Assembly (NCBI GenBank): GCA_907165135.1
Contig: OU015569.1
Span: forward strand, 8,680,001-8,744,000
Length of the DNA stretch: 64,000 nucleotides
Reading direction: 5' to 3'
Source: Oikopleura dioica
Lineage: Eukaryota; Animalia; Chordata
Shown here: piece after piece, positions 2,564 through 60,530 of the stretch
Layout: each line of letters starts with the position of its first letter
Numbering within the stretch: position 1 is the first letter of the stretch
Notes under the pieces: model-generated
What the model saw: only the letters and a program-made list of their open reading frames with translations
Told to the model about the DNA's origin: nothing
Databases searched by the model: none
Made by a program: the position numbers and the translations under genes

Positions 2564-5141
2564 TCAGCCTCTTTTTGTATCCTCAGCTTCTTCAGCAATT
2601 TGCTGGACATTTGTATCCAGACAGGTCTCAATAAAAGTTGCAGCTATAGATCCGACGATAGATCTATCTGGTATTGTCTGAAAATAAGCTTGATTCTATG
2701 CAACCGATCAAAAACCATTACCTGTGCGAGTCCATAAACCGCTACTGCGTCACTCACATATTCAGAGCCCGCAGCTAAGAGCGCTGCGTTTAGCTCTTCA
2801 ATGTCCTTAGATTATTTTGATGAATCGTAGCTCTGTACTATATAGAGTCTATAGCCCAAGTTTTACCTTCAAAATTGTGTTCACGACTCCGGACTTAGTG
2901 TGCGTTCGCGTTACAGTGATGTGAATCCCAGATGGAAATTGCAGTGGTCCGAAAATCCATTTTTTCTTTGAAGCAAGATCGTGCATAAGCTGGAAGATAT
3001 TGACCTTATTGGATGTGAATGCGACAACAGTGCCGATGCTTTTTCCCATAATTTTCAGCCCTTCGATTCTACTTATTCCCTCTCGCAAAGCCCGTGCAGC
3101 ATCGAGAACGGACTTTGTTCTTTCAATGTAGCCTTTTTATTTGGTTCCAGTTGACGCTACCCGGTTGGTCTCGCTCCGGATCACAAAAAGCTGGAACCAG
3201 TTCCTGCATGCCCAATTTTAAGCATGCACGCCCATGTAGTTGCACTGCTTGCTCCCGAACGACTTCCTGCGTAAGTTGGCGTGGCGTAAACTCCACCAGG
3301 CCAGTCAGTGCAACTGTAGATTGCTGCTCGGCGTATTTCGGGCGTTCGAAACATAACAACAGACGACCCCTTCAAATATTTGCTTTCTTGAATGCAAACT
3401 ATAATTACCTTTGGACAATACCCATATTTATGTGTGTCACATGAGATCGAGGTCACATGACTGAGCCGGAAATCAAAAGTCGGGATCCTGTATCCAGCCG
3501 CAGCTACGAGTTTGATTTACTTTTGCTATCTTGAGAGCACCTTACCAGCGAATGGATTTATAAAGCCACCCAAGCAACAGTCGACATGAAATGGAATATT
3601 GTAGTTTTTAGCTAATTCGTTTATCTTCGCGAAATCATCATAGACTCCATGAGGGTAAGTCGGTGCAGATCCGACAAGTAAGCAAGTGGAACTGCTGATA
3701 GCTTTTATAAAGTTATCCAAGAAGGTGTATTTCGACTACTTTTGAGTGAAATTATGAGTTTCAGATAAATAACAATCCTGATTTCATCTTTCGAACGTCG
3801 GCTTCATATGTAGTTAGGTGAACAGGCACTTTGATCTTTTTAACTCGGAAGTAGTCACAGGCCTCAGAAAGATGTTAATATAGAGCTATTTTTAAGTAAC
3901 CTCACCTTGTCAAAAGCGGGATGTGCAGTAGCAGGCATAATCAATTCAGGCCATTTTATGCCTTTCGCTAGGGCGATGTTCCTAGCGCTGAGAACTGCGA
4001 GCCCAATAGATTCCGTGCCTCCGCATGTGAACAGGCCACAAGAGTCCTTCGGGCCATTATACAGTTTCAAGCACATGGCGAGAACTTCTGCTTCCATTTT
4101 TCGGACTCCCTGGATATTCATGAACTCGAATTCGAAAGGAGCTTTAGCTTTACCTTGAAAACGTCCGCGTGAAGTGGATTTGACCACATGAACATTTCAT
4201 ATGCTTTCGCTGAGATTTCGATAAGATCTGCGTCGTGGTCGTAGACAGCTCCCTGCACTCTTCCATTTCTCCAATCAATCGTGTCCATTTCGAGGTAATC
4301 TTAAAAATGAAGCTGGAAAAAGTCGAAACGCATTCTTGATACCTTGTACAATGAGTTTCATTTCGTCTACCGTCTTTGACTTGGCAGGCAACTCGAGCAA
4401 ATAGGATGGGTTGTACAAGTCCTTGTTGTTTCTCACTGAACTTTTCGCCTTTTCGACCTCAGCTTTGATTTTTGGACCAATGACGGGCAGAACGCGTAGT
4501 TTTTGAAAGAATTGTGTCTTTTGGTGATACAAAGATGAAATAATTATTAATAAAAACCTAAATGAATGACCACTGCCTTGACTCGATCGGTGAAATGTTT
4601 GTCATGATTGTAGACAATGTCGTAGACATAGCATGCAAGAAAGGTACTTCCAGCGGTTTTCAACACTGAAGAAATGCGTTGCAAAAACAGATAAAATGTT
4701 CCGCTCAATTACAGACAGATGGCAGCAGGTGTGCGTGTACTTTGGCGCGCTAGGAAAAAGGTCGCGAACTTTTTCGATCAAATTCCGACGTTTCATTTTT
4801 TCCAAAGACACGAGTACACACGACCTTCACCGAACTCAGAGAGAAACAAACACATCAGGTTTGTGGTTCCTTGAAAATAACGAAAAAACATAGTTTCGAA
4901 GTCTAATTTTGAACATAAGGACCTGATATGATTTATTCTCAGAAAATAGACGAAAATAGACTAAAATTTTTAACAAAAAATTTTGATTTTTCAGCCAATA
5001 ATGTATTCTTCTTTTTTGTGTTTTATAATTACCTAGGCTGAATTTATCCTCATTTTTGCATTTTTCGTTGACAAAAGCTTTGAGGGCGCTGACAATCTGG
5101 ACGGTCTGCTCTCTAAGTTGCAGGATCGCTTGTTCGTTCAT
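2564..5141 (-). CDS. SGPL1: Sphingosine-1-phosphate lyase (multi-exon)
   Basis: Motifs MWSNPLHADVF, GVRKMEAEV, TCGGTESI, SAPTYPHG, HVDCCLGGF, SISCDTHKYG (PLP lysine), DWPGGVYATPTYAGSRSG and VYGLAQ. Confidence 0.95.
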
Positions 5142-6424
5142 CAAAAAGTTCTTAACGTGTGGACCTCTTTGTGCCCTTTTTGCGTTGCAAATGGGCGGAC
5201 CCGGAGATCTATTGGTCGACGACTATTCTGTAAACACTGGCAAACTGCGCAAATGAATGACTCTCGCGTAAAAGTTTAGAGTTTTTTTTACGAAGCTTGA
5301 CCTTCGGACGTCCTCTTGCGTGCTCCCTCTTGACTGACGCATTCGTAACACATGCCCAACGGAAAACCCCAACGCCACGGTTCTAGAACTTTCAATTGCT
5401 CAAATTAATTCGAAATCTATATTTCCTTTGTCTCTATTGTTCTGCTAAATCATAAAATGGCTGGATAAGTGTACTTTTTAAACTTGAGAGGGCGATTAAT
5501 GGATTATTAAAATCGGTTTGAAAACTAAAATTATAGGGAAATTTTTGAAAAATTGCCACCATTTTGAGACGAGAGAATTTCAAACGTGAAATTTCCTTGG
5601 ATGTGATTTCCACCAATTCCTGGGAAAAAAGGGACGGGGAAAATGCCCAACTTTCGTACATTTAAGATTTGAAAATATTTATTGGGCACTAGAATTGAGC
5701 ACTTAAAATCTATGCATCGACGACTTTTGCTTGGATGTGGATAGAAGTTGCGCGCTCATGCAAATCTCAGAATTGAGACCATCTTGTGATGCTGTATTTA
5801 TTTGAACATTCTGCTCACAGAACGGAAACAAAAATATACTAAAAATTCTCGGAATTATTTGATCTTTTCGTGACCCTAACGTCTTTCCGTGTACTTTCCA
5901 AACAACACAATCATATCTTTCCAAATATCTCCAAAATTTCATGGCAAAACGAATAAATGGATTGAAAAAAGATAATAATATTTCTAAGTCAACGAAATTC
6001 AACAACAAGGCCTGTACCGTAGATGCTAAGAAGATTGACTAGAAGTTATAGGCTTATTCTCCTTATCGGAAAGGTATATAGGTTAGAGATGCGCAATCAG
6101 CAGGTGCAGCATGAACAGTTCCAGAAGTACCCCAATTTCGCAGTTTTGTTATTATAATCATCGAAAAGGGATCAGTATCTATTTAGGTTGTTCCAGGTGA
6201 GCGAACAGTGTACTGCAGCGCCGCCAAAAAATCTTATAAAAGCAGCAAGGCCTTCTTGAAATTTATCACAACTATAACTCAAACTGTTTAGTCATCCATC
6301 AAAAGCAACAAACAAGTGGCATTTCAGAGAAACTTAACCAACCCGCAAAAAGTAAGTTAAATTCCCAGAAATCCGACTAGCATAAAAGTAGAGACTTTTC
6401 CTTCAATAACAGCCTTGTAGTTTG

Positions 6425-9275: not shown

Positions 9276-9510
9276 ACTGATGTTCCTTTTCAGATACTCT
9301 CCCTTTATTTCCCATGCAAGTTCATCGTACCCCTGTTGTAAATAATAAATATCAAAAAACAGTAAAAGCTTCTTGTTTTACATCGTCAAGAATACTTTTT
9401 TCGAACTATCTGAGGTAGAATCACTTTATTGAATTTATGAGTTCAGAACACAGTCGACCACGGTAGCACTTATCAGTAAAACACAGACACAACCTAAATT
9501 TACAGAGAAT

Positions 9511-15252: not shown

Positions 15253-15331
15253 TTCAGCAATCTGAATAAGGAATTCGTCAAAAGGGAAATAAAATAAGAA
15301 CATGGCAGGGGCTCATCAAATCGTGCAAAAC

Positions 15332-22020: not shown

Positions 22021-25000
22021 ATGAGTGCGATGGTCGTCGACACCAACCAAAGGTTAGTCGGGAAGGCCCCGCTAGCGAGTAGATTGTCTGACAGTAGCGA
22101 CCCTTTTTACGCAGGAAGTGATAAAAGGTCTTACTCTGTCAAAACACGAGCTTTGTTCAATCGTTAAAACTTAGTACCTATAACTCAAGGCAAAATAATG
22201 GTTTTGGTTTTATCTTGAAGAAGTTTAGAGTCTTATGTAAACCTCGTTTAAAATTTACTAGAGTATTCTATCAAATTTTAACAGTTCAAGTTCGAAATAA
22301 TTTAACTACATTGTGGGTACAGAAATGACACTCAAATCGTCAACGACCTAATGCACTACTCAATCAATAACGCCGAAGTCAGTATTCAAGATCAGCAGTT
22401 CTACGAGTGCGCCGTAAAGGAACTTCGGTTGAAAGTGACTAGAAAAAGTTGACTCCGTTACTTTGTTTTCGGCGCAATGAAGGAATCATCCACCCGGTCC
22501 AGACATTATTATTTTCCATATATGTCTGTCTTTAAAATTGTATTGATAAACTGGAGACATCTTTGTTTAATCTTTCTGATTTCCTATCGTCAGTCAGCCT
22601 CAAAACTAAATAGCAAACAGTGATAATATTGAGTTGATATCGCTATTTTCAACCTTGTAAAAGTCGCTCATCCGGAGGCTGCGTCGCAGGAATGGTTCAT
22701 TTCTCTCTGTTCGAAATTCATTGTTCTCCCGAAAGGTGCGTGAATCTATTGAACCGCCAAAGCCAAGAAAAGGGTATCGTTGAAAATCTCATCAGAAGCG
22801 TGAAGCATGCAGACCAGGACACTGCCTGTGTCAAAATTCCACGTTCTCTTGATGGACGCATGCAAGGTATGTAGACAAAAATCGACTAGAAAAGAATAAC
22901 GAGCAAATATCTCCAGTTATGCAGAAGAAAACTATTCCGCATGTAATATTTTACCAAATATGGCGAGATAAAACAGTGAAGTCGTACCACGAGCTGCAAG
23001 CAATCGTCACATGTCGCCATGCATACGGTAACAGTCTTGAAAAGAAAAGCGAGTGAAAATGCCGCAAGTAAGTGAATTTATTGTAATGGTTTAAGACATG
23101 TCACAGACCGGTGGCGAGATCTGTGTCAACCCATTTCATTATGAAAGGAAAGTTGAGAAAGTAAGAAATAAGCCGCTATCCAACAACAATGGAAATATCA
23201 CATCATTTCCTCAACTAGAAATCAGGCGCGTGCGACCACAACTGAACGGCATCCACCAACTGGTCGATAGGTAAGATTCTAGGCAAGGGCAGAACAGCTC
23301 TATGCCGAATATGATAAATGTATGAACAATAGCGACTCGAATCGACGTTTTTCTTGTGATTTTGATGCAAATGAAAATTAAATATTTAGAAGAACTCCTT
23401 ATTGTTACAGTATGAGTTCGATTAGGTAAGGTTTTTGCATCAAGTGGGTTGTTTTATGTCCGTCAAAATTTCATTATGAATGAACTGCATTTGGATTGGA
23501 ATGTTTTTCATATTTTACCTCACCCAAAGGACTTCGTTACTTTCTCCACCATGACAAGTCGTCACGCATATAAATAATCCGAATGAGTTTTGAATCTAAA
23601 AAACTGCATGTTCTTACGTCTTCACTTCATTAAATGTTAATTATAAAAGAGCGAAATACGGAGCGGACATTCGATCTTCAATAAAACTGTAAGAAAAAAA
23701 TGTTTGCGACCATGAATTATTATTTTTCTTTTGTTGTGTCAAGCATGATAACAGATATTTGTTAGCCACTAATCGAAAGTTAAAAAGTCAACAATAGCTT
23801 CATCTATATTTAAGACAAAGCCAAGATACTTGCTATTCGTTCGACGACAGCAATCAAAACATGGTTTATGACAACGTAAGTAATCTTTCATGTGAATTGA
23901 AACTTATCTATTTTACGTGGTTGAACTTACTGGGAAGCTCTCAGAGGGAATTATTAACGTCATCTATCGTAATATAAGTTAGTCTCAGAGAAGCAACCAA
24001 CCAGTCGAGATTTTAATCAAAGAGATGTCGAGCAAATTTATTCTAGTTTTTTTTTTAATTTAACCTTTGTGATTTATAATTTAATCTTATTTTCGAGAAT
24101 ACATCTTCCCCATTCTATTTCTACTGTAATTACTTGCTCCAATTTCACGCATGATTTCAATATAGATAAAAAGTAGAAAGAAGTGAGACGTCGTTGTTGA
24201 TTTGGCTGAAACTGGCCTTTCTAATTTTCGTACTCTGATCCCAATACTAACAAGCTATTTAATTTTTAGCAGGCAACGGCTCTACCGGCCTCCAACTTCC
24301 AGCAAACAGCCCTTGTACTGCATCAAGGACAGATGCAGTATTCCAACGAAGGAGAGACATCCACTAACAATGGTCAAGCGTGGCTTACAGTAGCTTACTG
24401 GGAGCGAGAGATTCGTCTCGGTGAAAAGTTTTTCGGTTGGCAGCCAGACGTATTTATCAGCGGTGGATACAACCCTAACACTGAAAACGGGTCTAAATTC
24501 TGGTATGTTTAACTTTCAAAAAAGTCAAATTCATTTTTTTTATTACTGAAAGCAAGACAAATAGTCTTTTTTTACAGTCTTGGAGCGATCGCGAATCCAA
24601 GTAGGGATGACAAGACCAGCTCTGTTCGCTGTCACATCGGGCAAGGGATAAAAATCTCCGGAGGTCCAAACTGCCAAGTCGTTTACCTTGACAACCTTTC
24701 TGATCATGCTGTGTTCATCCAAAGTCAAAACTGGAATATTCGTGCCGGGCAACACGTAAGTTTATTTGTGAAATGCACTTCCTTTGTTATATAACATGTT
24801 CGAACTCGTCTAACAGCCGACAATTGTGAATTTTCAGAAAAATAAAATCATAAAAGTCCCTTCGCGCGGCAGAGCTGAGGTCTTCAACACCTCTGACTTT
24901 TACGAACGACTCTTTGCCGCCAAAATCCACGGATACAACGCCGTCGCCGATCTCGCTCACCACTGCACCATGCGTCTCAGGAACTGGATAAATCCGATCA

Positions 25001-25208
25001 ATATTTTTTACGCGACAATAATTTATAAGAATTGTAATTTATCATCAATGGAAGCTTCGTGAAAGGCTGGGGCGTGGGCTACAAAGTGCAAGAGATCACT
25101 TCTACTCCATGCTGGGTGGAATTGACCCTTCAACACTCACTCGCATGGATCGATGACTTTCTTAAGGGTCTTGACCCTCCAGGAAAGAAGCCAAGCTCAT
25201 TCACATAA
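22021..25208 (+). CDS. Divergent receptor-regulated-type SMAD (MH1 + MH2)
   Basis: MH1 CVKIPRSLDGRMQV...CVNPFHY; MH2 WLTVAYWEREIRLGE, FCLGAIAN, SFVKGWG...ITSTPCWVE; C-terminus PSSFT*. Subtype not assignable. Confidence 0.93.
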
Positions 25209-27072: not shown

Positions 27073-29039
27073 GTACGGTGGACAGTATCACACGCAATGT
27101 CGGGAAAGCTGGCTCCACCGTTGTCAAGTACTCTGAAGAGCTTTTAAATAAGGCCAGGTTCTTTTAAGCATGACTAAAGCAAGAATCAAGCATAACTGTG
27201 AACCGTCAACAGGAAACTGAGAAAATCCAGGAAGCGACTGGATTGCCACAATGGGCGGTAATCGCTCTTGCCGTAATAACGGCGATCGTGACCTTTTGTT
27301 TGCTCATATGCGTTTGCAAAAAGTGCATTTGGTGAGATTACGAATTAATTCAGTCTGAGACGAACATAATTAAGCAAAAAGCGTAAAAAATCGAAGAAGG
27401 GAAACCAAAAAGAACAAGTCATCGACATGTCGCAGGTAATGAAGCGCTCTCTATGCTCCGAATACTAAACGAGGCGCGTTTGTAGTTCAAGAATCTTGGC
27501 GAAGAACTTGACGAAGTGTCGAAAAAGGAAGACACAGAAGAAAAGGAAAAGGAGAAGCTGGGTACTCTCCGATTCAGCTTAGGTAAACTGTCAATATTAA
27601 TCGCGGGATCTGCAAGAGATGCTCTAGATTATGACTTCGAAGCGAACAACCTAAAAGTGCACGTGATGAACGCGAACGATCTCCCGGCGATGGACTTGAA
27701 CGGCACTTCTGACCCGTACGTAAAAGTGTACGTCCTTCCAGACAAGAAAAAGAAGTTCGAGACCAAGGTGCAAAAGAAATCCCTCAACCCAGTTTTCGAC
27801 GAGACATTCAACTTTAAAGGATCGGCGAAAAGTAAAGAAATTAGACATACGGGCAAGCATATGCCGCGACGAAGATTGAATTCTTTCAAAACATAAAAAA
27901 TAGATGAGAAACACTTGACACAGATTCATGTTCAACATAGAGGATTTCCAGCATCTCTTAGACTTGCACTTGATGTATGAATACTTTTCCGAATAGATTT
28001 TTATGTGTCGCGAGGTAAAATTAATTGTCCTCTGTTCGAGAAAGCCCGATCAATAATACCCTCGATATTTGCTGAATAACTCTATCGAAACATGTGTGCC
28101 GATAATTTCCCAGAGGTATTCGATTTGCGTGTCAATTCAGCACGGCCCTAAATTTGTCGTGCAATTCTCCGTCTGCACCGTTCTCTTCGTTGATGTCAAA
28201 CAGAATCCCCCTTTTACATGCGACGAGTTAATGAGAAATATATTATATATTCTATTTGATTCGCCCTTGGCAGTGCTCTACAAAGAAATCGGCTCTAAAA
28301 CTGTCGTCCTCGCCGTTTACGATTTCGACCGCTTTGGAAAACATGACATTATTGGAAAAATTGAAGTTCCGCTCAATTCGATCGATCTTGGACAAATTTT
28401 CGAAACAACGAAAGAACTAGAAGCTGCTGACAAGGTTTTACTTATTTATAAGCGTAAAGTGGTTGATTTTCTATTTCAGGATTCTGAGAAATTGGGAGAT
28501 GTTTGTTTCTCTCTCAGATACGTTCCGACATCGGGTAAATTCACTGTGGTTATCTTGGAGGCGAAGAATTTAAAGAAGATGGACGCCTGCGGTCTTTCAG
28601 ATCCATACGTGAAAGTCAACCTTATGCAAAACGGGAAGCGGCTGAAAAAGAAGAAAACAACAGGCATGAGTTTACGATCATTCTGTAATGCCGCATTGAT
28701 TTATTACTGCAAGCGGCAAATTGAAACTCGCCAAAGTCAAAAAGAATACTCTCAATCCCTATTACAACGAGTCATTCAGCTTTGAAGTTCCCTTCGAGCA
28801 GATTCAGAAAGTAACTGTAGTCATCACTGTCCTCGATTACGATCAAGTCGGCTCGAACGATCCAATCGGAAAAGTTGTCGTCGGCTGTGGTGCTTCTGGC
28901 CAAGAACTCAAGCATTGGAGCGATATGCTCTCGGCGCCACGGTAAAACTTTTCTCAAGTTGGATTTTGTCTTCAAGTGTCTATCTAGGCGACCGATCGCT
29001 TCATGGCACTCACTGCAGCCAGCGGAGGACGATAAGTAG
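27073..29039 (+). CDS. SYT1: Synaptotagmin-1-like (TM + C2A + C2B; 5' end uncertain)
   Basis: [30 protein letters not shown]; C2[13 protein letters not shown]...[10 protein letters not shown]; C2[13 protein letters not shown]...KKKKT...[10 protein letters not shown]; C-terminal [10 protein letters not shown]. Confidence 0.95.
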
Positions 29040-29811: not shown

Positions 29812-31314
29812 ATGGCGGATATGAACGGTCAATTACTACCGAACTTCAATGGCGGGAACCCTTGGGCACACCATCCGCTAACACAACTTTCTCAAATGGG
29901 CCAACTTGCCAACTCTGGTTTCATGTTCTGGAACCCCACCGTGATGAACAACAACTCTCTCCAACTTCAACTCCAGCATTTCAATGCAGGAATGCGGTAA
30001 AAGGCAAAAAAGTGAATTTTATATAAAAAAAACTATTAGAAATCGACGTCAACGTGGAAAATACCCCGTTCCAAAAGTTGAGCCAAACTCGCATAATAAT
30101 TTTCCGAGGCACAGGGCGCAGGGACTTGTGAACAGAGATAGTAATCCACAAGAGAAATCTAAAGAGAGTGGAATCGCCAGCGCGAATACCTCCAGGTAAA
30201 ATTCTTTTCGAGGTTTTTATCAATCGATTCGTCAGCCAATATGATGGCTCTGTGGGTTCACGCTTCACCGTCCAGACGAATACTATAGGACAAAAGGTCA
30301 AGCACGAGCCGCACATGTCGAGAAGAATGAGTTCTACTTTGAAGTCGCGCAATGGAATGAGCCACAATGGTACCTTCAACCAGGTGTGAGAATAGAATTA
30401 TTCATCTTATCTAAAAACTGTTTCAACAGTCGCCTATTAAAAATGAGAAACAATCGTTTGTCTTGGTTGCTGGCAATGACTCTATCGTTGTTGATGTTGA
30501 AGATAAAGGAAATGGGCCAGGTGTGACCATAAGGAACAGGGATTATTAAGCTAATAACTAGATTTTTCGAGGAAAAACTCACAATAATAATTTATCATAT
30601 ATAATTATTGAGCAATCCTCTAAAAGACAGACACCACAATGGGCCGAGAAACCACCGACAATAAAAAACGAAGAGCCAAAAAGCTACGCTGATCTCAATA
30701 CTAAAGAAGATCAAAAATGCAATAAACAAGATGAAGAAAATCAATGGGAAACAGAGGAAGAATTACAGGTTATAAATCAAAGGAGAAAGATAACTTGAGG
30801 ATAAATTTAGGTCAAGCCATATATGCCGCGAAAAGGGGCGATGCGGAAAGGAGTATCCGAAAATTTCCTTGCCGAGATGCTTCCTAGTACTGTCAGAACA
30901 GTCTCGAGGCAACTCTTCAAGGATCGACCCTTGAAGCGGTTGGATCCAAACTCCACCGCCAGATTGACGAAACGAGTATCGATGAACTCTTCGATCAACG
31001 CGCCTGTGCGTTCCAATCCTGCTGGCAGCAGGTCCAAGAAGAAAGCACGAAGAATTAGTAATGTGAAGGATTCGGCAAAAGTACTGCGCGAGAAGAGACG
31101 AAAACAGGTGCAATCTAAAACTTTTTCTTATTTCACGAATTCCTTTCAGCCGACAATACATGAGGACGGGGATGTCGTCTTCACGGCGACACCAGTAACC
31201 GCATCGAGCTGCGACGATTCCAAGGAAAACCCGAAAAAACGAAAAGGATCCTCCTTCGCGCGATCTCTCTCGAAAATCTTCAATAAAAACAACAAAAAGA
31301 AGGGAATGAGCTAA
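29812..31314 (+). CDS. Uncharacterised low-complexity protein (N/Q-rich N-terminus, basic C-terminus), probably one spliced gene
   Basis: Successive GT-AG-linked open exons from MADMNGQLLPNF to KNNKKKGMS*; no domain recognised. Confidence 0.45.
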
Positions 31315-32140: not shown

Positions 32141-33988
32141 ATGAAGTTGCACCCTCTTTTATTTATTATCGGCCATGCACTCGAAATACAGTGGAATAAC
32201 AGTGGCCAAAACGCGAAGAAAAGAGAGAAAAAGAAAAAGCGGGGCTTATCTAGAGTTCCTATGGAAAATTCAGCAAACTTCAAGGAACAAACGTTCGAAG
32301 ACGATATTCAAGAAGAGATAAACCTTTCTGATGTCGTAGAATCAGCACCATTAGAGAGTAAAGAAGTGACAGAAAAAATACCAATTCAACGTGAAGAGAT
32401 TTCCGAGGAAGCAAGTTGTCCAGGAAAGGTCGAAGACCAACTTTAAATTTGAAGACTTTTATTAATTAATCAAGACCGCTAAAAGTCACAATTAATTTTG
32501 GAAACCGCCAAGCAACAGATCCGGTTTTCGAGTGTATTAAATATTGCCTCGCTTATGCACCAACAACTACGACAACTTCTACGACTACAACTAAGCCAAC
32601 TACTACTTCGATAACGACCACAACTGAGCCAAAAACGACAGAGTCAGTGACAACTTCTACCACCTCAAGGAGAACTCCCTCAACTTCCTCTTCAACTACT
32701 TCGACGACGACTTCGACGACAACTACAACATCAACTACAACGATAACATCAACTTCAACAACAACAACAACAACATCAACCACGACTACAGATGAACCGA
32801 CCACAACAGAAGAAGCGTCTACAACGTCGACTACATCAGCAACGACTACGCAGGAAGAGTCATCTGTGTGGACAACGACCACTGGAACAACATCTACTGC
32901 CGAAAAAACAACAGAGAATCCAGCCACAACTACCGTGAAGCCAACGAGCACGACACTTGGAGACTTCCAACCACTAATGGACAGTATTGTCACTGGACTG
33001 AAAACATGTGCAAATAAGTCAAATTTCATAAAAGAATCGGACTCAAGAAAAAAACAAAAGAAAAACGCTAAAATCATCGGCGGCGTAACAACGTTCGAAA
33101 ATGATTGGCCTTGGCTAGTTTACCTGGAAATGGGTTGTGGCGGTACTATTATTCACGAAGAGTGGGTTCTAACAGGTAGAACCAGTTAAAAAAGGTCAAC
33201 ACAAAATATGTTTTTAGCTGCACATTGCTGTGAAGGTGAAAAAACAATAACCGCTCGCTTCGGTGAGTACAATACTGAAGATGATGATGAAGCATTGACA
33301 ATGACAAGCTCACAAATCTTCATTCACCCAGAATACGGACAAAAGAGCGATGGCGATCCAGACAATTCTGACTGGTGTTTGATTAAATTCGGCGAGAGTA
33401 TTTTACAGGCTAACGAGTATGCCTCTTTGTATTCATAACGCGTGAACCCTATTCTATTATTAGTAATGATGTCTCTACGCAAATCGCATGCTTGCCTTCG
33501 GGACCAATCGACCATGGAGAAGCCTGTTGGGTCGCAGGATGGGGAGATACTGAGTACGACTCTGGAAAGTATTCGGATGTCATATTATCAGCCGGAGTGA
33601 ACATACTCGGCCCGGATTATTGTCAAAAATATTCAAATATTGGCAAGTTGAATATTGATGATATTTGCGCCGGCCTTCCTGATTTCGACGGAGACGGGGA
33701 CGGGCTTTCTAGGACACCAAGAATATTTCTTATAGATAAAAGATAATTTTATTTACTCTGGTTCGATAAATGAACAATCGAGAAAGCCAAATAAGATTAA
33801 CAGATGCAGGAAAAGACGCTTGTCAAGGCGATTCTGGTGGTCCGCTGATCTGTGCTCAAGATGGCCGCGCTACTATTGTCGGCGTCGTATCCCGTGGAGA
33901 GGGCTGCGGCAAAAAAGGCCAACCTGGACTCTATTCTTCGACGTGGAGCGCGAAAGATTGGATCGTTAAAACTGTTACAAAAAACTGA
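32141..33988 (+). CDS. Secreted trypsin-family serine protease with Thr-rich mucin-like stalk
   Basis: Signal peptide, poly-Thr region 32560-32960, K|IIGG activation site, intact triad in TAAHC, NSDWCLI and GDSGGP. Confidence 0.92.
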
Positions 33989-36250: not shown

Positions 36251-36258
36251 CCTCTGAC

Positions 36259-46002: not shown

Positions 46003-48017
46003 CTAACAACGACTCCGCTGGAAAGTATACGCCATTACTAGTGGCCCAGTAGAGGGAAAAATAGTAAAACAACGCTTATGCTTTTCAGCAGAGTCGCTTG
46101 TCTTTTTTTCATCTTTCACAAAAACCCCCATCTTCAGAAGTAAAAATCCAAAAACAATTCGCTCATCTTCGTCTGTTGCACCAAACCAAGATCTGACGGT
46201 ACCATTCTGAATTCTGTTAATCCTGTCGATTCTTGCTAAATGAAAATGCTTACAATAAAAACAATTCATTCAAGAAAAACGCGGATCGCCGACTCAGGAA
46301 TCTGAGATCGCCGGCCTCTGAGAAGTAGCGACCGTTCAATCGATTAGTTCACAGCTCGTCTGCTCCTTTATCAGAAAGGCGGCTTGATTCTCGTGCAAAT
46401 TATGGGAAAAAACTTAACGTCAGCGCACGGCCGATATACTTGTTACGCCTGCGAGAAATCGTTCTGCCTGTCTCTTGGAAAAATAAAAACTTTAAGCATT
46501 GGATCTAGGGTGATCTAAGTTCTGAACGGACATGTCAGTGCACTTTTTATTTTGTCCGTATCTGTCCAGTCTTATCCGTACGGAAAGACTAGACTTATGT
46601 CTTTTTGCGGAAGGAAAAAGGGCAGACAAGACAAGACTTTTGCCAGGATCCGGATTTGTTCGTATTCGTCCGTGGAGTTCGGACAACTCCAGAGTTTGGA
46701 ATCAAATTTAGTCAGTCCAAGTTCAGGAGTTCAGACTTCAGTTAGACAGTTAGACAATGGAGAATGATTTCGGGCAAATTTGCCTTACAGTCAGAGCTAA
46801 CTTTGAGGGTGACTACTTACCCCTGACAGTGCCTTTCCCAATATCGCTTTCCACATGAAGTCCGTTTCGCCATAAGCATCATCCTGAATAAACTGGAAGA
46901 AATGCGCATAAGCTCGATAAATATAGAACAAATGTTGCAATTTATTTAAATTTTGTCGCAAATGATCTCGATCTTCAGCCATGTTATACATGAAGTACGT
47001 GATCTGATCCAGTAGTCATCGCTAGAACTTGAATTTTAACAGCGTCGTTTGCATACTTTTCCAACCACTTTGTTGAATTGGTGAACTCAAATAATTAAGT
47101 TTCGAATTCGAGAGTTATAAAATCAATTACTTTTGCGAGTCAGTTTTTTATGAATAGAGATGCACTGTCGTCTGTCTTTGGTAAAGAAGAAGTCGACAAT
47201 GTCATTGTAGCATCTGCTAATCGCGGAGAGGCTCGTCGACCAAGTCGAGTCCCAGCTTCTTTGCCACTGGCTGCATTCGTTTTTTAGACCCATCGTGCTT
47301 TTATATTTTGTACCTAAAAAGTTTACTACATGCTAAAAATGCACTTGAGGTTACCTCTCTGAGAGCCGATTATGACTCCAAAAGAGTTCACTTTACGCAT
47401 GCACGAGCGAAATCGCGACCTTGGCTTCAAATGGGTTTTATCGTAATGTAATTGTGGTCAAGTGAGCTGTCTTAATTGAATTCGTTTTAATCTCGACTCA
47501 AACCACTATCCTGCGAGGAGACGGCCATGAAGTTCTTGATAGCACTTGACAGAGCAAGCGAGACTCGGTGAACGCTTCTGGATTTCTTTGCTTTGGAAAA
47601 GTTCTTGACGAGGGGCTGGACGAGTGAGACGTATTCGCGGTCTAAAAATGAAGAGATGAAAGATTCAACCATACCGTGCGTTTCATAAGGAAGCCACGTG
47701 TGGTAACGAGCTTGTCCCAGAACAGGTTCGCACGGTCCTCTGCGTCCATCGTCACGCGCCCAGTAGCCCGCCTCACCAAAGCCATCACGACATCTAAAGC
47801 AAATGATGCATGATCACAAGGTGTTGTGTTATTTGCGCGGTTCTAATTTTGACTCACCCAAAACCAGCAAGTCATAAACCCCAAGAGCAGCTCTGAGGGT
47901 CTTGTGATTACGAGTGTTAGAAACGTACCTGCATTCAGTGTAACGTTGTTTGAAGTTTATTGAGTACTGAAAACAGTCAGCGTTGAGTGCGCAAGCAGGC
48001 GAGCATTCATCATTCAT
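46003..48017 (-). CDS. Multi-exon protein with N-terminal EGF-like module (ends uncertain)
   Basis: DECSPACALNADC...CRDGFG EGF pattern; exons chain in frame (AVSSQ|PRSRFRSCMRK...GSQR|GTKYKSTMGLKNEC). Confidence 0.5.
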
Positions 48018-51187: not shown

Positions 51188-51222
51188 AGATTATACTTCA
51201 TTTTAGAGAGTCTATTCCTTAA

Positions 51223-51879: not shown

Positions 51880-52285
51880 TTAAACTAGCTTTTTCATTGA
51901 AATTAAAAATTCGCATCCAAAAAAAAGAAGCACGAAAAACCTCGATCGGAACTCGTAGCTTCGAAACACTGGCCGATTCTGCCCAAGCAGTCATGGCGAT
52001 CTTAGGCAAAGTTCGAGAAAAACCACCATAAATAGGCTTACTCTCACGGTGCGTTCCGATTCTCCGCTCGTAGAAAAAAAAACGAATGTCTAGGCATTTT
52101 TTTGCATTGGGTCCTGAGAATTGAGCATTTTTTGATATAATCACGTGATCATCAAATTCTGGAAAGGAGTTTCAATCAGACATAATCGAAAATTGCGCCG
52201 AGCCGTTTCCTGGTCTCGTTTTCCCGCACTGTTTATTATTTTCTGCCCGTAACTAATTGACGGTGGCGTTTTATTAAGTTGTTGA

Positions 52286-53385
52286 GTGAGCGGCAAGCCA
52301 ATTTTGTTTTTCGCTTTGATACTATTTATCGAACTCTCGTGTGCAGTTGGTGTTGGCCCACCACCGCCCCCGTTCCCTTCATATGATGAGATTCTGGAGA
52401 AATACGTTTGGAACACCTGGGGAAGATGGAGCTCCTGCTCTGAGACTTGCGGCATGGGCACTCGCACACGTACTCGGACTTGCAATCGCTCGACCAGGGT
52501 CTGCGAGAAATTCCTTGAAACCAAGGCCAGCGAGACAAGGCGCTGCCGGGATCAGCCATGCTGTGAGTCATTTTTTACTTCACTATAGAATTGTATTTAA
52601 CGCTCTTCGTTTCAGCGTGGTGGACATCTTGGAATTCGTGGACTTCTTGTTCCAAGGTAAAACGCACTCAGACTCGTGCAAGAAGAAGTTTTCTTTTTAG
52701 ACTTGTGGAGAGGGCATTTCTGTGAGACGGCGGCAATGCTCCGGCAGCAACTGTCTTGGAAAAGCGATGGACAATCGAAAATGCTCAAATGCACCTTGTC
52801 GTAAGTTGAAGTCAAGGACACGGATTGAATTAGAAATTCAACCGTCTTAATCTTATTTTAGACTCAGGCCAACGAAACTCGGACTGGGAAGAGTGGAGTT
52901 CTTGCCAGTCGTGCTCCTACGCCGCCAGACAAATGAGAAAACGGTTTGGAACTGAAATCGGCGCTCTAATTTAAGATTAACCTAGAGCTTGTGCGTTCAA
53001 GACGCCAACATGCCCCTCGCCTCCTATCGAGAGCCGCTCATGCTTTCAATCGGCGCAGTGCAAATCCGCGCGAGCGATTACTCAGGCGCCATCTCCATCT
53101 CCGACTCTTCGCACCAAAAGACAGAGAGCGACGACGACTCCGTCAACGTCCGTGCGTAGCAGCGGCTGGTCGGAATGGTCAACGTGCAACGCCGGCTGCG
53201 GACACCTCGGTTTCAGGTAAAACACGCGCGCCGCACTCATTGCTTCGACGAAAACAAGCTCTGTTGGTGGCGTATTGATAAAATCGCAAAAATTTAGAAC
53301 TCGAACACGTCCTTGCACGTGGAAGCCAAAGAATTGCCATAAATTCAAGAGCAAAGCAACAGAAAGATGCTTCAGACGTTGTTGA
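52286..53385 (+). CDS. Secreted thrombospondin type-1 repeat protein (4 TSRs; start codon not located)
   Basis: [49 protein letters not shown] and [12 protein letters not shown], linked by GT-AG introns. Confidence 0.85.
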
Positions 53386-53717
53386 ATTCAGAAGAAACGA
53401 TTTAAAGAGATTTCAAGTTCATAAAAACGAATAAGTCTGCTTCTTTTGAATCATTTGTACAAAGAATAAATTACTGCTTTCCATAAAGATTCTGTCGCAA
53501 AGATTCGAAATCACTTATCTTTTGATGGCGAAAAAAAATAACTTTTTTTTGTTGAATCTGCTCAAAAATCCAGATCGTAGTTCTACACTTTCTCGACTAT
53601 TGCAGGTGCTTTGGCCATTCAGCCGACTGATAAATCCTGCTCACATCGTAAAATTGGAATGAACTTTAAATAACACCACCAGCGCATTCTCAAACATTCG
53701 TTTCTTCGAATGGACAA

Positions 53718-56700
53718 ATGCGTTTCTCTACTTTTAATTTTTATTTTCTTTTAGTTTACGCAAGAGAATTGAAAGAAGAAACAAAGTTAAATTACCGTAA
53801 TAACAAATTCTTCGTTCCAGGAATGTTCTTTTTAATTTTCCTCGGCGACTTATTTATTTTAAAAGTATTTATCTTAAAAGTCAATTATTCAATCGAGTTA
53901 GAGGAAAATTGAAAAGCCCTCTAAGTTTTCACCGCCAACAGCACAAAGTACTTGCATACGACCGACAAATTAAGTTCGGAAATAATCAAAGCAATCGAAG
54001 ATGTAAAGGCCTCGAGGTCCCTTAAATCGTCACTAATGACGTGGGCTTATAGGCATTCGTCCGGATAAAGTGGGTTTTCAACAGTGGTTGATATTTTCTC
54101 CTTGATCTAGTTAGTGCCATTCTACTAAGGCGCGGAGAATTTCTTCAAAGAAAAAGAGTAGAAATATATATTTCTCGGCTCACGTGATTCTATTTGGTGA
54201 CCTCACTTGAAGAAAGAATTCGGGATTGATCTAGACGTAAATATTTTCGAATCCAATTGTCAACCGGATCTTGTCATCTCAAAGACACTTTCGCTATGGC
54301 AAAACAGGAGCCAAGCACCTCCAGTTGGGCTTGTCGGCTTTTCTTGCGACGCAGAACATCACACAGTCGCCCAACTAGCCTCCCAGTGGGAGCTCCCTTT
54401 GATCGCACCAGGAACGGTTATACTTATTCATTCTCCTCATAGCCATCATTAATTATAACCGAGCAGGGATGCGTCGAATACTGGGCGAAAAAGACTCGCC
54501 TAGGCGAAAGAAAGCATCGACGACGATCCGCACAGGTCTCCACAGGAAAGTTCAACCATTAGAACATGTCGTCTTTCTAACCGAGTTGTGGAACAAATTA
54601 ATTTATATAATATAAACATCGCGCTTAGTAGCTTCAGTTGAGAGATGCTTTGAATAAATATAAAGTGACGTTCTTGCACGTTTTCTGAAGGATCTCCTTG
54701 ATGACCAAATATTCAATGATACATACGAGTAATGAGCTAATCGTTTCGCGAATGCAGCATAAATGTTTTCAGTCCAATTAATCCCTTCGGAGTATCGCTC
54801 CTTTCGCTTGCCGAGAGTAAGCATGGATACCCCAAATCATCGGAAAATGACGGCGATTGCGGGGCTTACATGGCGCAGCTCCATTCCAAATTGAGCAAGG
54901 AAAAGAAAAAGTACAGTCCAGTCTCCATTATTGCCGAGAACGAAGAGGAGTTCTGCGACAAGCAGGATCAAATCGTTGCGGAGATCATGGCGCGCTCGCG
55001 AACGGTGATCTTTTGCATGGGTAAATGAATTAGAGGCGAAGCATTCGGCCGCACTTGTGGAATTGATTAGCAAACTTGGTCAAGTAAAATTTCGTTTACC
55101 GTTTTGTTAAGAGCCACACCTGTTCCGGACAGCTTTACAGGAGTGCGACCGCAAGAGCCACGCGCATGAAAATATGAACTTGCTCGAAAATCCTCTCACG
55201 TGTCTCCTCTGAGGCAAGATGCTTTGCTCATAATTTTTTCGTCTTTTTATGACGATTTTAAAACTTTTGATTAATAATAAAGAGCAAAGAGAAAAGAACG
55301 CGCGTGGCATATTTTCTATCGCATTTTAGAAAATCACAGAATCGCCACGTTACAAGCTCGAACACGACAAAAAATGGAACTTTATCTATCTGGACTTGTA
55401 TCGCCAAGTCAACTGGGACAGGCAAGGTTTAACTAGCAGCACTATCATGCGATTTAAGCAATCACTCTTGAACCGTTTTTAAAAGTTGTTACTTATGGTC
55501 AGGCAACTCTGAAGAAAAACAACTGTGCCCAGAACCTGCAGCGAAGAATGCTTACTCGACAAATATCTGGACCGAACGATTAAACGATACTCTTAAGGCA
55601 AAACCATTTCCATCAGAAGACCTCTTGACTGGCATTTGGCAGACATCTGTCGTCAGTGTTCCGCAACTTGGCTTACCACGTTTAGTGGGTCCTATAGGCG
55701 AGTGCAGAAATCAACCTCCGTGAGTTCAGCATTTCCTGCTTGACGTTTATAACTTGATGTTTATCTCAGTGAGTCCTCATGCGCTGAGAACCCATTCCAG
55801 TACTGGTATTACGAGGCAATCTTCAGTCTTGGCGCGGCAATCAATCACACTATCCAACGCGGCGGAGACCCTTATAATGGAACTCATTTGCTTGACTTCT
55901 TCAGAAACGGATCTGTAGAGATTCGAAAGCAAATAGGCTGGTTTCCCGATCAAACGGAGCAAGTCAAAAAGTACTTCAATGATCTGATGGAGCTTGATGT
56001 AACATTCTCTGTTTCTCAATTTTTCTCGCCGACGCTTTTAAGTCCTACCAACGCACGTGAGGTTCCGAAGTGTTTCAAAAATCGTGATATAGACAACGAA
56101 TGGATTTTCGATAGCGAAGAAGGAAAACGGTGCGTTGAGGAAAAAGGTAACGTGCCTACAACTAGCCCAATTAACTGAAAAATAGACTGCGAGATGACTT
56201 GTGGAATAGGTGATGAACCATGTTGGGTCACGTGCTTAGAATGGAACTCAGCTTCTGGTTTTCCTCGCTCAAGCTATCATGATAGGCTCATCTGAGTAGG
56301 GTTGAGGCATTTTATTTAATTAAAGCAATTATTCATGCAATATATATTCCATTCTTATCTTAATTTTATACATACCAAGAAAAGCCTATATTGTAAAAAG
56401 CTTATTCTTAGGCTAATTCAGCTTATTTGAAAGTCGAATTTCCTTAGAGTTAGGAAATTTGGGCAGATATTGAAACTATTACAAAGAACTAAGAAGGAAA
56501 TAAGCATCATATGAGCCATTTTGTTGAATAAAATTGTTTTACGGATGATGTATCTGAAGGCAAGAGATTAAAAGGCTAATGTGGTATAGGCAAAATTAAC
56601 CCGATACTGTCCCTGCGACTTTTCGAATGAACCTCCGCCTTGTGGATACGACGGAGCAAAATGTGACAAGACGAACACTGTGCAGGTCGTCATTGTTACG

Positions 56701-59700
56701 ATTATGGCTAGGGATCACGTTCTCGGCGAACCTATAATAAACCAAGCAATTGCTAAAACGTGCTTAAAGCTGTAGTTTCAACGGGATTTATTCTTTTTGG
56801 AACAGTCAAACTAGCATCATACATTCAGAAGCGTTTCAGGTTCGTTTGAGGAAACATAATGTTTCATTTCTATTGTTGCTACTGTTACTTGATAATGCAA
56901 TAAATCATTTGCAGATGCATCGCGAATCCGAACGAGCCGCCTTTCGAAGTCAACGAAGAAGTGGAGAAAGATGTTGATGTGAGCCTTTCAATTTGCTGAG
57001 ATCTGGGTTAAGTAAAAATTAAGAGTTTCATCAACAGACGAATTACGGACAAAACCGTGGGAACTCCCATCGGTGGATATCTCCGGGCATCTTTGTTCTC
57101 CATGAACGGGCAATCAGGCCCTCAGGAACGATTTCAAAAGCGTAATTTCTAGGAAAAGTTAACGATTATGAAAGGAAATTCCCTCGAAAGCTACGAAAAC
57201 GATACACCGATTTAGTTGTCTTCAAAGAAACCGTTGTGGCAATAAAAGATCTCGGTCCCCAATTCGCGTTGCTGAGACTTATGAAACAAGAAAAAGAGGA
57301 GCTGCGAAAAATGATGGTTTTAAACCACCGTAACGTGGCTGTCTTCCATGGATTGCTTTATGAAAATGAACACGGCTACTTCTTGCAGGAAATTGTCAAA
57401 AGGCGGAGATTTTTTCGTCTCTTGCTTGGCAAAGCAGGAGAATGTCATTTTGGCTTTCTCCTACTTTTGACGAAAGGGAAGGAATATGGTGCGCACGGCA
57501 GCCTCAAAGACATCTTGTCAAGCAAAATTCAGCTGACGTGGGAAATGAAGAAGTCTCTCGTCATAGACTTAATAGAAGGTCTCGCCTACATTCACAGGTT
57601 CACAGTTTAAACTTTTTGCTTGTTTTTTGCGCCGCGGCAAAGAACTCATTTGAATCAAAAGGTCGCAGCTTCGCTATCACGGCTTCCTGAACACGACCTC
57701 GTGCTTAGTAACTGGAAGACTCGCTGTTAAAGTGGGTAATTATGGTAAGAGCTGTTCAACGCGTATTATATTATCATTTTCAATTGTTTCTTCTAGGCGT
57801 CCAGCGACTGCGGCAGCAAGCACGGATTTTTCGAAAAGACGAGGTAATGCGTAATCGATGAGTCTATGAGTCTGTTTCAAGTCGGAAGCGCAAGAATCCG
57901 CCTGGCTAAAACGAGCGGACATTTATCTCATTCCGCAGTCGTACTTATATCATACTTCGTGATTTATTATTAGAAGGCTCATCCTGCGTTAAAGTTCAAT
58001 TGTATTCTCGCTTTCTAACAAGAGCGATTGTTTAATTCTGATAATTTGTGACTGCCGAGGAGCCTTACCGGAAAGGATAAGCCGGAATAGAAGTGACATT
58101 GGCCGGAACACTGGAGACAAATGCTCGACTGATCCGCGCCATTCTAAAAAAGTCGCTCAAGCACGTGAAACGGGCTAGAAATTTTAAGCAGAAGTCACTT
58201 TAATTTGCTGCTGGTCAAGGGTAATCCAAGAAACGTGTTCGCTGCGAGTTTAGAACTTTGGGAGACTGAGCTTGTTGTAAATTAGCATTCCGAATTCAGG
58301 ACTACCTCTGTCGATTACAACTCTGGCAAGCGCCTGAAATTCTCAACAACCCGTCTGAGACCGACGTCCGTGAGTACAACAACGGATCATCGCTTTGCTG
58401 GCCAAGACTGGACAAGAGATAGTGCTCGCTCGGTGATATTAGCGACGCAAGCTGATCCAATGTTGTTTTATGCAAAATATGATTTTTTTCTTAGCGACGT
58501 TACAACGCGCCGATGTTTATTCTTTTGGAATAATCGCACATGAAGTAATCTACGGCAAAGGCTGTTTTTGGCTGGGTCCTGAGACGCCCAATCCAAATAT
58601 CGAAACGCTTGGTGAGTGGCTTTCTACCTTTCATCCGGCTTCAAACTCCATTTAGTCGAAAACGTGCGCAACAACTTTCTGGATGTCAATGGCAACTCAC
58701 CACGCCCCTTTATCCCAATCGATCAGAGCGAACACATTCGACTGTGCAACATCCAGGTACATGTTCAAACGCCGTCTTTGCTTCCTCTTTGATTAGCCGA
58801 GCTCTCCGAATCAGCTCAAATCAAGCGTCGACATGGCAAACATCATGGTTGCTTGTTGGTCTCAAAATCCTATCCAAAGACCAGAACTCGAGCGACTACG
58901 TAAAACAATGTCTTCGGGACCCAGAAAAGATATGGTCGATGACCTTGCAACACGACTACAGGTCTTAAAAGCCCTCAAATAAAGAATAGACGCCTTTTTT
59001 CTAGGATTACACAACGAAACTTGATCAGATGGTCGACCAAAAAACGCGAAAAATTGCTGAAGAAAAAATGAAAAGCGAGGAACTTTGCTATAATCTCTTG
59101 CCAAAAAGCGTGGCTGAAGATTTATCTGACGGAAAGGAAATAAGTAACTAATGATAAATGACAGTTTCCTTTGTTGTTGTTCTTGAGAAGAAAATATTAT
59201 TACTGTGAAAAGGGCTACGAACCAGTAGAATTCAAAGCAGTAACAATCTACCAGTCTGACATTCAAGGATTCACCAAAATCGGCACTCAGTCGAAGCCTA
59301 TTCAAATTATGACGATGTTGCGCCTGATCTACGAGATCTTTGATCGCATCATATCGACGGTGGACGCCTACAAAGTCGAAACGATCGGCGACGCATATGT
59401 TGCGGTGTCGGGTGCGCATCCTCCGAACTCGAATCATGCATCGGAAATTGCCACTTTCTCGCTCGCTGTTCAGTTTGGGCTTCAAACACGCGCACATTCT
59501 TTCTAAATTTCTAGCTCCGCGTCACAAAAACGCGTTCTCAAGCCTGAATCAGCGGGAAATCGACAAATTTCAAATTCCACACCTTCCACACGAAAAACTC
59601 ATGATCCGAATAGGCCTTCACAGGCACCAGTTCCGAAAAAGACAAACTTAACTTCTGAATAAGGTTAAGTCAGCCCTCTTTAGATAGCGGTCGATAGCAC

Positions 59701-60530
59701 TCAAGCCTAGGAGGCACTTGAAAATTACTTCGATTAGTGAAGAGAACATTAAAGGTCTTATGAACTCATCAAAAGTGGACCGGTAGTAAGTGGCGTTGTT
59801 GGCAACGTCATGCCAAGGTGGTGTCTATTTGGCAGAACAAGAGAGCTCACAGATATCATGGAGTCTTGTGGCTCATCAGACTCGGTAAGCAAGTCCGAAT
59901 TAGAAACAAACAACCCTTTAAAGATTCACGTTTCCGAACAAACAGCCGAGTTTCTACGAAGAGACCCGAAAATAAACTGGTCGGTTGGACTGCGAGAACG
60001 GCCCAGGGAAGACTTTCCTCCTAACATGGAGAAGATCGAGGGCGAAATCGATCGAACATTTTGGCTCGTGAAACACGGCATTCCAAGAACAGGGAGAAAG
60101 AGTCAACTCGGCGCATTCATGCCCGACACATATTCGAGGCTGACGAGGAATTCCAGCTCGAGTTTATGTGGCTCGCGGTCAACGAGGAGGTCGTCGGTTC
60201 CCCTTTCGATCCATTCAACGAATTCCATCGGCAGCTTTATTCATCCTTATGTCAGCAAAAGCAGGTTAGTTTTTGTAACTCTCCATCTGTCAAAATGTTC
60301 TAAGCTCGAGTGAACTCGTCAAATCAAACAGTACGGCTTCGGTGGGAACCCTTACTGAAGATTTGGAGCAGAAGTGGAAGATCGGAAATTTGAACTCCCA
60401 GGGGAGGAGATCGACGATTTATCTTGAGCCGAGTAAAAAGGAACGCACGCGAGAAACTTATAATGAGCCTGTTCGAGCGAATCCACGTAATTACGGAAGA
60501 CTCAGCCGCCGATTCTCCGCGCTTATGTAA
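53718..60530 (+). CDS. Receptor (membrane) guanylyl cyclase, natriuretic-peptide-receptor architecture
   Basis: Signal peptide; ligand-binding ECD (LASQWELPLIAP); PPPCGYDGAKC; TM segment; kinase-homology domain (EYGAHGSLKDIL, ADVYSFGII); cyclase TIYQSDIQGFT, YKVETIGDAY, RIGLHSGP, MPRWCLFG. Confidence 0.93.

Follow-up and report, generated by a model that had tools for sequence, protein, structure and literature searches.

Closing helices in near-fixed register at the non-GT introns of Oikopleura dioica

The larvacean Oikopleura dioica has lost the minor spliceosome, yet splices thousands of introns that begin with GA, GC or GG and end with AG (G[ACG]-AG introns). Non-canonical U2-type introns of this G*-AG kind make up 11–12% of the introns of the species (PMC8008620). 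We describe here the introns of this kind in a stretch of 64,000 nucleotides (nt) of its genome (assembly GCA_907165135.1, contig OU015569.1, positions 8,680,001 to 8,744,000; hereafter the window; 41% GC), many of them in a gene for a guanylyl cyclase of the ANF-receptor/kinase/cyclase build (hereafter the cyclase gene), and find that their two ends carry an inverted repeat that can close the intron with a short helix in a near-fixed register. A helix so placed and confined to one intron class is a concrete and testable candidate for the signal by which these introns are spliced.

The helix connects three systems of non-canonical introns with paired ends, those of larvaceans, of euglenids and of a dinoflagellate parasite. 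The larvacean Fritillaria borealis has only a U2-type spliceosome, and many of its introns break the GT-AG rule (Henriet 2019, as summarised in PMC11282704 and PMC13326754); like O. dioica it has introns with terminal inverted repeats, for which the account in PMC11282704 gives a proposed transposon origin. As far as those summaries describe them, the Fritillaria classes (AG/AC, AG/AT, YAY triplets) have visible target-site duplications, whereas the O. dioica introns run from G[ACG] to AAG after an exon ending in CAG and show neither a clear duplication nor a shared repeat motif; Fritillaria also has duplicated U2AF subunits, which O. dioica lacks (PMC13326754). In Euglena, as in O. dioica, intron ends are paired by a helix a few nucleotides inside the 5′ end with a 3′ spacer 2–3 nt longer, the terminal dinucleotides are non-canonical, and an origin from miniature transposons is suspected (PMC12501133; PMC11282704). 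The non-canonical introns of Amoebophrya likewise have inverted repeats, of 8–20 nt, that form a hairpin, with short direct repeats at the boundaries (PMC7789003), but they fall into families with identical repeats and their splice sites vary relative to the hairpin, whereas in O. dioica families are not seen and the register is narrow. The introners of Micromonas and Aureococcus, as cited in PMC13326754 and PMC7789003 from Huff et al. 2016, are DNA elements that carry terminal inverted repeats and give rise to introns on insertion; unlike the introns described here they are, in those accounts, high-copy, constant in length and canonical GT-AG, with clear target-site duplications.

A literature search found no description of such stems in O. 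dioica, although the primary larvacean intron studies (2010, 2019) lay outside its reach and an earlier description is possible. None of these introns matches an Rfam family. A mirtron is a whole short GT-AG intron folded as a pre-microRNA-like hairpin of about 20 base pairs (bp) or more, and the introns described here do not fit that description: their ends are non-GT, and most of the helices have 5–10 bp and enclose large loops.

An unbiased intron set and its closing helices

The preliminary description of the window listed 12 introns with non-GT donors, in SGPL1, SMAD, synaptotagmin (SYT), protease, EGF and cyclase genes, and claimed for each a stem in a near-fixed register. Both claims hold for the listed introns: all 12 run from G[ACG] to AG on the coding strand (the minus strand for SGPL1a, SGPL1b and EGF), and when the first 30 nt of each are matched with its last 30 nt, the longest Watson-Crick run is in every case the stem originally named. 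Counting + from the first intron nucleotide and - from the last, these stems are of 5–10 bp and begin at +4 to +7 (that of Cyc1 at +14, or at +8 if one G-U pair is allowed, which makes it a 16-bp helix), with an offset, the excess of the 3′ over the 5′ distance, of 2–6. The mean in-register run is 6.9, a value unmatched in 20000 permutations, compared with 3.25 in a chance control in which each 5′ end was paired with another intron's 3′ end (132 pairs); runs of at least 6 bp occur in 75% of the real introns and 3.8% of the mismatched controls.

Because the list had been chosen by eye, an unbiased intron set was needed. The last cyclase exon, used as a query, led to a 5.6-kilobase (kb) metatranscriptome contig, L001, with an unbroken ANF-receptor/kinase/cyclase frame of 1106 residues about 80% identical to the window cyclase (a sister lineage), and since this frame is uninterrupted and so similar, L001 represents the spliced orthologous transcript. 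For every gap between homology blocks, all donor/acceptor pairs were scored by protein alignment alone, blind to splice sites. The resulting model has 26 introns (13 GT-AG, 11 G[ACG]-AG and two with other ends) and gives a single open frame of 1269 residues. The preliminary list had only five non-GT introns in this gene; its 12 entries stand, but it omitted six further G[ACG]-AG introns and two odd-ended ones. The non-GT-AG introns of the cyclase gene are as follows.

53821..53925, plus strand: Cyc1, GA-AG, 105 nt; 16-bp closing helix (one G-U) of +8..+23 with -10..-25
54009..54212, plus strand: new intron, GC-AG, 204 nt; stem GAGGTC/GACCTC at +6/-9
54412..54466, plus strand: Cyc2, GA-AG, 55 nt; perfect 8-bp stem CGGTTATA/TATAACCG at +4/-6; top placement
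54546..54665, plus strand: new intron, GA-AG, 120 nt; 5-bp stem TTCAA/TTGAA at +6/-12; top placement
55141..55329, plus strand: new intron, GA-AG, 189 nt, after a mini-exon at 55112-55140; 9-bp stem GCCACGCGC/GCGCGTGGC (+17/-22) plus 5-bp stem TGCGA/TCGCA (+4/-7); placed by alignment to contigs L004 and L005
55422..55485, plus strand: new intron, GC-AG, 64 nt; consensus-like donor GCAAGG; in-register run of 4 bp only; top placement
56294..56608, plus strand: odd-ended intron, 315 nt; ends GA..CT, AG..TG, TG..AC or CT..TA (3-nt slide); closing helix
56711..56769, plus strand: Cyc3, claimed as GG-AG, 59 nt; stem CACGTT/AACGTG at +6/-8; junction uncertain by one codon
57126..57190, plus strand: new intron, GA-AG, 65 nt; no long perfect run; imperfect closing helix in the fold, offset 5-6
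57389..57481, plus strand: Cyc4, GA-AG, 93 nt; stem GTCAAAAG/CTTTTGAC at +7/-11; top placement
59137..59212, plus strand: new intron, GA-AG, 76 nt; 5-bp stem AGTAA/TTACT at +7/-9
59474..59552, plus strand: odd-ended intron, 79 nt; ends TT..AG, GT..CA or others (4-nt slide); 9-bp closing helix, offset 4
59624..59775, plus strand: Cyc5, GC-AG, 152 nt; stem AGTTC/GAACT at +6/-10

A closing helix was scored where the minimum-energy fold pairs at least 4 bp between the first 25 and the last 32 nt, at an offset of 1–7 nt. Nine of the 11 cyclase G[ACG]-AG introns have such a helix in register, as do both odd-ended introns, compared with none of 16 verified GT-AG introns (9/11 vs 0/16, Fisher p = 1.2e-5), which bears out the earlier remark that the few GT-AG introns then checked show no such stem. 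The fold gives 16 closing pairs at offset 2 for Cyc1, 13 for Cyc3, 15 at offset 4 for Cyc4 and 14 for the odd-ended intron at 59474-59552, whose end-to-end duplex has an energy of -16.8 kcal/mol. For the unbiased non-GT set as a whole the mean end-to-end duplex energy is -13.3 kcal/mol against -6.9 for mismatched ends (p=9e-4), whereas in GT-AG introns true and mismatched ends are no different (-5.5 vs -5.9, p=0.6). When no register is imposed, the best run still falls at offset 2–6 in 8 of 11 non-GT introns. Typically the helix joins about +5..+12 to -9..-16, leaving a 3′ single-stranded tail 2–6 nt longer than the 5′ one, and the offset is positive throughout and narrow, though the arm sequences are unrelated. 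Among the listed introns outside the cyclase gene, 4 of 7 have the closing helix in the fold and all 7 have an in-register run of at least 5 bp. We conclude that the stem is a real feature of the non-GT introns of O. dioica and specific to that class.

One GT-AG intron of the cyclase gene, at 55021-55111, shares with its L005 orthologue a conserved helix of +1..+9 with -13..-21; its register (offset 12) differs from that of the non-GT class and the pyrimidine tract is left free.

The junctions in the cyclase gene are placed with varying precision. Cyc1, Cyc2 and Cyc4 are the exact top placements in the splice-blind alignment to L001, and for 54009-54212 the unconstrained optimum is 211 and the G..AG solution, which agrees with the annotated protein P0004, reaches 210. 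Cyc3 is one codon away from the best solution, a 62-nt intron (for example 56708-56769) scoring 189 against 178 for the 59-nt intron given previously. The Cyc5 orthologue is kept unspliced in L001, with matching ends. Neither odd-ended intron has a G..AG solution among its best placements. Placed blind to splice sites, 56294-56608 scores up to 288, compared with 260 when G..AG ends are required; its 5′ end is conserved in the sister-lineage genomic contig L004 and the complementary DNA (cDNA) L001 ends at ...ATCTG. For 59474-59552, which sits within the conserved cyclase catalytic domain, the corresponding scores are 213 and 202. RNA for the junctions came from three bulk runs, all of the sister lineage, with reads 90–95% alike and the cyclase barely expressed, in which only loose read ends were usable. 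Support for removal from mRNA is indirect, drawn from sister-lineage RNA and protein homology: the orthologous cDNA, exact cDNA-to-genome junctions for two orthologues and spliced reads for one.

The annotated O. dioica protein Oidioi.mRNA.OKI2018_I69.XSR.g15855 reproduces the cyclase exons of the window and places the locus in the X-specific region of the Okinawa assembly. Annotation of the AUGUSTUS type agrees with our model at most cyclase sites and mis-models the two odd-ended introns. The annotated model behind P0004 (about 52000-60600) fuses a thrombospondin-repeat gene to the cyclase and skips or misreads conserved exons at about 56185-56770 and 59473-59552, exactly where those introns sit; gene predictors thus mis-model such introns, and a helix-aware model could improve larvacean annotation. 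Non-GT-AG introns make up 13 of the 26 in this gene (53718-60268), on the X-specific region, compared with 11–12% genome-wide (PMC8008620).

The seven listed introns outside the cyclase gene, which contribute to the statistics above, are the following.

3133..3203, minus strand: SGPL1a, GA-AG, 71 nt; 9-bp stem TGGTTCCAG/CTGGAACCA at +5/-10
3702..3777, minus strand: SGPL1b, GA-AG, 76 nt; 5-bp stem GTTAT/ATAAC
24981..25054, plus strand: SMAD, GA-AG, 74 nt; 7-bp stem GATAAAT/ATTTATC at +7/-12
27820..28273, plus strand: SYTa, GA-AG, 454 nt; 6-bp stem GGCGAA/TTCGCC at +5/-9
28664..28736, plus strand: SYTb, GC-AG, 73 nt; 6-bp stem GAGTTT/AAACTC at +5/-8
33698..33795, plus strand: protease, GG-AG, 98 nt; 8-bp stem GGCTTTCT/AGAAAGCC at +6/-8; junction not pinned
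47425..47510, minus strand: EGF gene, GA-AG, 86 nt; 5-bp stem GGTTT/AAACC; junction by frame continuity only

The synaptotagmin junctions are residue-exact against Syt1 structures (SYTa against chain 5kj7_E at residues 73|74|76, SYTb at residues 189|190|191), and both SGPL1 junctions agree with the ends of homologue blocks, which for SGPL1a stop at 3202/3204 and resume at 3133/3136. The SMAD junction is supported from the downstream side only, where the exon begins at MH2 residue 149 (FVKGWG); a search of the PDB gave no match for the SMAD upstream piece, nor, at the threshold used, for that of the protease, whose junction falls in a variable loop. The EGF junction rests on frame continuity.

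It is conceivable that junctions or introns had been chosen so that stems appeared, and the omission of six cyclase non-GT introns, among them both that lack an in-register helix in the fold, together with the three unconfirmed junctions on the list (Cyc3, protease and EGF), would fit such a selection artefact. Yet with junctions placed blind and the cyclase intron set complete, the contrast is still 9/11 against 0/16, which largely refutes this explanation and leaves it scarcely credible.

Comparison with Syt1 also drew attention to a GT-AG intron of 45 nt at 28435-28479, within the linker of synaptotagmin, which is in frame and stop-free and would add 15 residues if retained. At the SGPL1b site, the larvacean contigs L007 and L010 have instead a GT-AG intron 12 nt downstream, and SGPL1 intron positions shift by a few codons between larvaceans.

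Splice-site signature and the Euglena code

The non-GT introns differ from GT-AG introns in their splice sites as well. Ends of the form G[ACG]...AG are common to the 12 listed and the six new introns, and two further stem-closed introns lack them. Among these 18, the upstream exon ends in C at -3 in 15, A at -2 in 16 and G at -1 in 17, in agreement with the earlier observation that most such exons end in AG. The first intron base is G and the second A (12), C (4) or G (2), with A at +3 in 12 and G at +5 in 11, and the intron closes with AAG in 15 of 18, whereas C or T stands at -3 in 12 of 15 GT-AG introns. The pyrimidine tract is poor, as had been noted: the pyrimidine fraction over -15..-4 is 0.48 compared with 0.62 in GT-AG introns. 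O. dioica thus has a distinct intron class, marked by a poor pyrimidine tract and by the junctions CAG|G[A>C>G]A (5′) and AAG| (3′). A consensus-like GC donor may go without the stem, as the preliminary description remarked for an ANKRD49 intron with GCGAGT: the cyclase intron at 55422 (GCAAGG) is one of two lacking a clear stem. A likely candidate for the ANKRD49 GC intron begins, on the minus strand, at 16296.

A scan of the window for this signature, which required an open frame on either side of CAG|G[ACG]...AAG, yields candidate stem-closed non-GT introns in other genes, at 14047-14169 (minus strand) and 30115-30164 (plus strand). The scan, and lists of GT-AG introns drawn up from consensus and open frame, were too noisy for statistics. 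A gene finder built from codon bias and site matrices, which recovered 16–18 of 24 training introns with heavy over- and under-prediction, was dropped.

The geometry of the helix raises the question of whether it, and not the dinucleotides, sets the cuts at fixed spacers, by an excision that is non-spliceosomal or only partly spliceosomal, as in Euglena. The placement of the helices, with spacers of about 3–6 nt on the 5′ side and 5–11 nt on the 3′ side and a commonest offset of 2, resembles the Euglena code 5′-N3-CDG...CH'G-N5-6|R (PMC12501133), Cyc2 fits that code exactly (GAA-CGG...CCG-AGCAG|G), two stem-closed introns are wholly without G..AG ends, and some helices would mask the 5′ splice site. 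Against this, the marks of the spliceosome are strong in the class (exon CAG, G at +1, A at +3, G at +5 and terminal AG). Euglena introns require the CDG/CH'G trinucleotides, have fixed spacers of 3 nt and 5–6 nt and lack conserved terminal dinucleotides; those of O. dioica, unlike them, keep G at +1 and the terminal AG, have arms of any sequence, and have more variable spacers (3–9 nt at the 5′ side and 5–11 nt at the 3′ side). Nor is the trinucleotide motif general, as Cyc2 alone fits N3-CDG...CH'G-N5-6 followed by an exon purine on inspection of ends and stem positions, made without a systematic scan. We therefore regard helix-defined excision of the Euglena kind as very improbable in O. 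dioica.

Orthologous introns in sister lineages

Genomic contigs of sister lineages, L004 from JGI and L005 and L006 from TARA and ENA, allow six introns to be compared across lineages. The exons of L001 and L004 are 100% identical, so that for the orthologues of 55141 (GA-AG) and 55422 (GC-AG) the junctions are true cDNA-to-genome junctions. The 55141 orthologue is removed in L001 relative to the genome of the same lineage and has 20–22 closing pairs in each of three lineages; the 55422 orthologue, of 144 nt, has an exact junction and 9 closing pairs. At 54546, where both intron ends are conserved in the sister lineage, the orthologous spliced junction is present in sister-lineage RNA reads (loose ends at 54667, 4 and 6 reads), matched to L005. 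Other reads of that lineage (3 and 4) continue from the 64-nt exon at 54667-54730 into the unspliced downstream GT-AG intron.

Neither L005 nor L006 has Cyc2 in its genomic DNA, and the cDNA L001 runs colinearly through the site; this fixes the Cyc2 junction and reflects either a gain or a loss. The other five non-GT introns tested are common to both lineages. The in-register helix is kept at four of six orthologous introns (54009, 54546, 55141 and 55422). The most divergent case is 54009, a GC-AG intron closed by GAGGTC/GACCTC in the window and a 78-nt GA-AG intron closed by GGGAC/GTCCC at +6/-8 in the sister lineage; the ends are about 20–25% identical, which is near random, and both introns close at +6 with unrelated arms. 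At Cyc5 the ends are conserved and the interior has diverged, and the stem has shifted to GTTCA/TGAAC, one pair having been lost and its neighbour gained. The arms and tails of 54546 and 55141 show plain conservation. As a whole the pattern suggests, from sequence comparison, that the helix may be maintained, though with six introns it is not decisive.

Two further comparisons were made at the level of arms. A DNA run, X5, about 1.4% diverged, has no arm substitutions inside the stems of Cyc3–5, a divergence too small to be informative. An RNAalifold consensus of the three 55141 orthologues misaligned the 3′ end and was set aside.

Inverted-repeat insertions and the role of the helix

Two readings of the stems had been offered at the outset, structure-guided splicing and diverged relics of terminal inverted repeats; each has gained some support and neither is proven. 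Terminal inverted repeats are present at the ends of the non-GT introns of the window, and one odd-ended intron, at 56294-56608, starts with TAGGGTTGA and ends with its imperfect complement TTAACCCGA, displaying the nonamer YAGGGTTGA. We take such ends to be hAT-like, on the terminal pattern YARNG of hAT elements. The orthologue of this intron in L004 (1277-1578) starts with CAGGGTTGA, and YAGGGTTGA also opens SGPL1 introns in the TARA contigs L007 (at 218) and L009 (at 254), from other larvacean lineages, so that it stands at the start of four introns, which come from three lineages and two genes. This recurrence suggests a family of introner-like elements.

One account of such ends is that the stems are neutral relics: young insertions with inverted repeats became introns, the stems are their decaying terminal repeats without a role in splicing, and the non-GT ends derive from the same insertion. 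The lineage-specific Cyc2, tiny at 55 nt, with the cleanest stem (a perfect 8 bp) and CAGG on both sides, fits this account, as do the recurrence of the hAT-like motif at intron starts and the mostly short stems (5–6 bp) of introns shared between lineages. A parallel is offered by Fritillaria borealis, whose non-canonical introns with terminal inverted repeats and target-site duplications are thought, in the account of PMC11282704, to derive from miniature transposons. Less easily explained by decay are introns whose interiors no longer align and which still close in the same register, one of them with unrelated arms, and an offset that stays positive and narrow despite arms of unrelated sequence; moreover the window holds no family copies and no target-site duplication beyond AG or CAG. 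On this evidence neutral relics appear somewhat unlikely, and were the stems relics only, they would still mark a route from inverted-repeat insertion to intron in an animal.

We favour a combination of the two readings. The introns may have arisen from insertions carrying inverted repeats, of a miniature-transposon or introner-like kind, and the helix may then have been kept because it would join a weak 5′ site to an AAG 3′ site without a pyrimidine tract for a single U2-type spliceosome. Such an inverted-repeat origin, with the helix retained as an aid to the spliceosomal pairing of weak sites, seems to us about an even prospect. Retention of a useful helix is favoured by its restriction to one class (9/11 vs 0/16), by a register that is positive throughout, and by its survival in sister lineages where intron interiors have ceased to align. 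Both the transposon origin of the main class and any part of the helix in splicing are inferred.

Several observations weigh against this reading. As regards a role in splicing, two of the 11 introns are without an in-register closing helix in the fold (54546, with a 5-bp run only, and 55422, with 4 bp), and some helices are of only 5 bp, with end-duplex energies of -4 to -8 kcal/mol. Some predicted helices span +1..+8, so that binding of U1 and U6 should be hindered. In the sister lineage the helices of the Cyc1 and Cyc5 orthologues are weak or outside the minimum-energy fold, the Cyc1 orthologue in L005 having different and weaker pairing at the identical site, and conservation of intron ends is not significantly higher in non-GT than in GT-AG introns (p=0.13, n=6 vs 4). 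The unbiased sample is, moreover, a single gene on the X-specific region. As regards a transposon origin, a self-BLAST of the 64-kb window, which at 0.1% of the genome gives little power, found each of the 20 introns once only, and the main class has no common terminal motif, in keeping with the initial impression that the arms are unrelated in sequence. The repeats at the junctions are AG or CAG only (CAGG at Cyc2 and AGGAA at Cyc4), with no clear target-site duplication, and AG or CAG is also the ordinary exon-end consensus.

A stronger form of the splicing role, that the end-joining helix is part of the splicing code in a chordate and sets the cut sites at about +5/-9 from its base in place of GT and the pyrimidine tract, we consider unlikely. 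Were it true, it would cover about a tenth of O. dioica introns (11 of the 26 in the cyclase gene, or 13 with the odd-ended ones), would be convergent with the nonconventional introns of Euglena, and would account for the tolerance of a single U2-type spliceosome towards introns that begin with GA, GC, GG or even a base other than G.

The SGPL1 genes of other larvaceans provide two further observations on intron ends. In one SGPL1 gene on L007 the introns at 217-310 and 426-509 share the 5′ string GTTGAACTG, one having non-canonical ends and the other being GT-AG. Another intron on L007, GA...AAG, 81 nt long and lineage-specific, carries the stem GGGTG/CACCC at +7/-9. Elsewhere in the window, the sole Rfam match is a tRNA gene at 13609-13690 on the minus strand.

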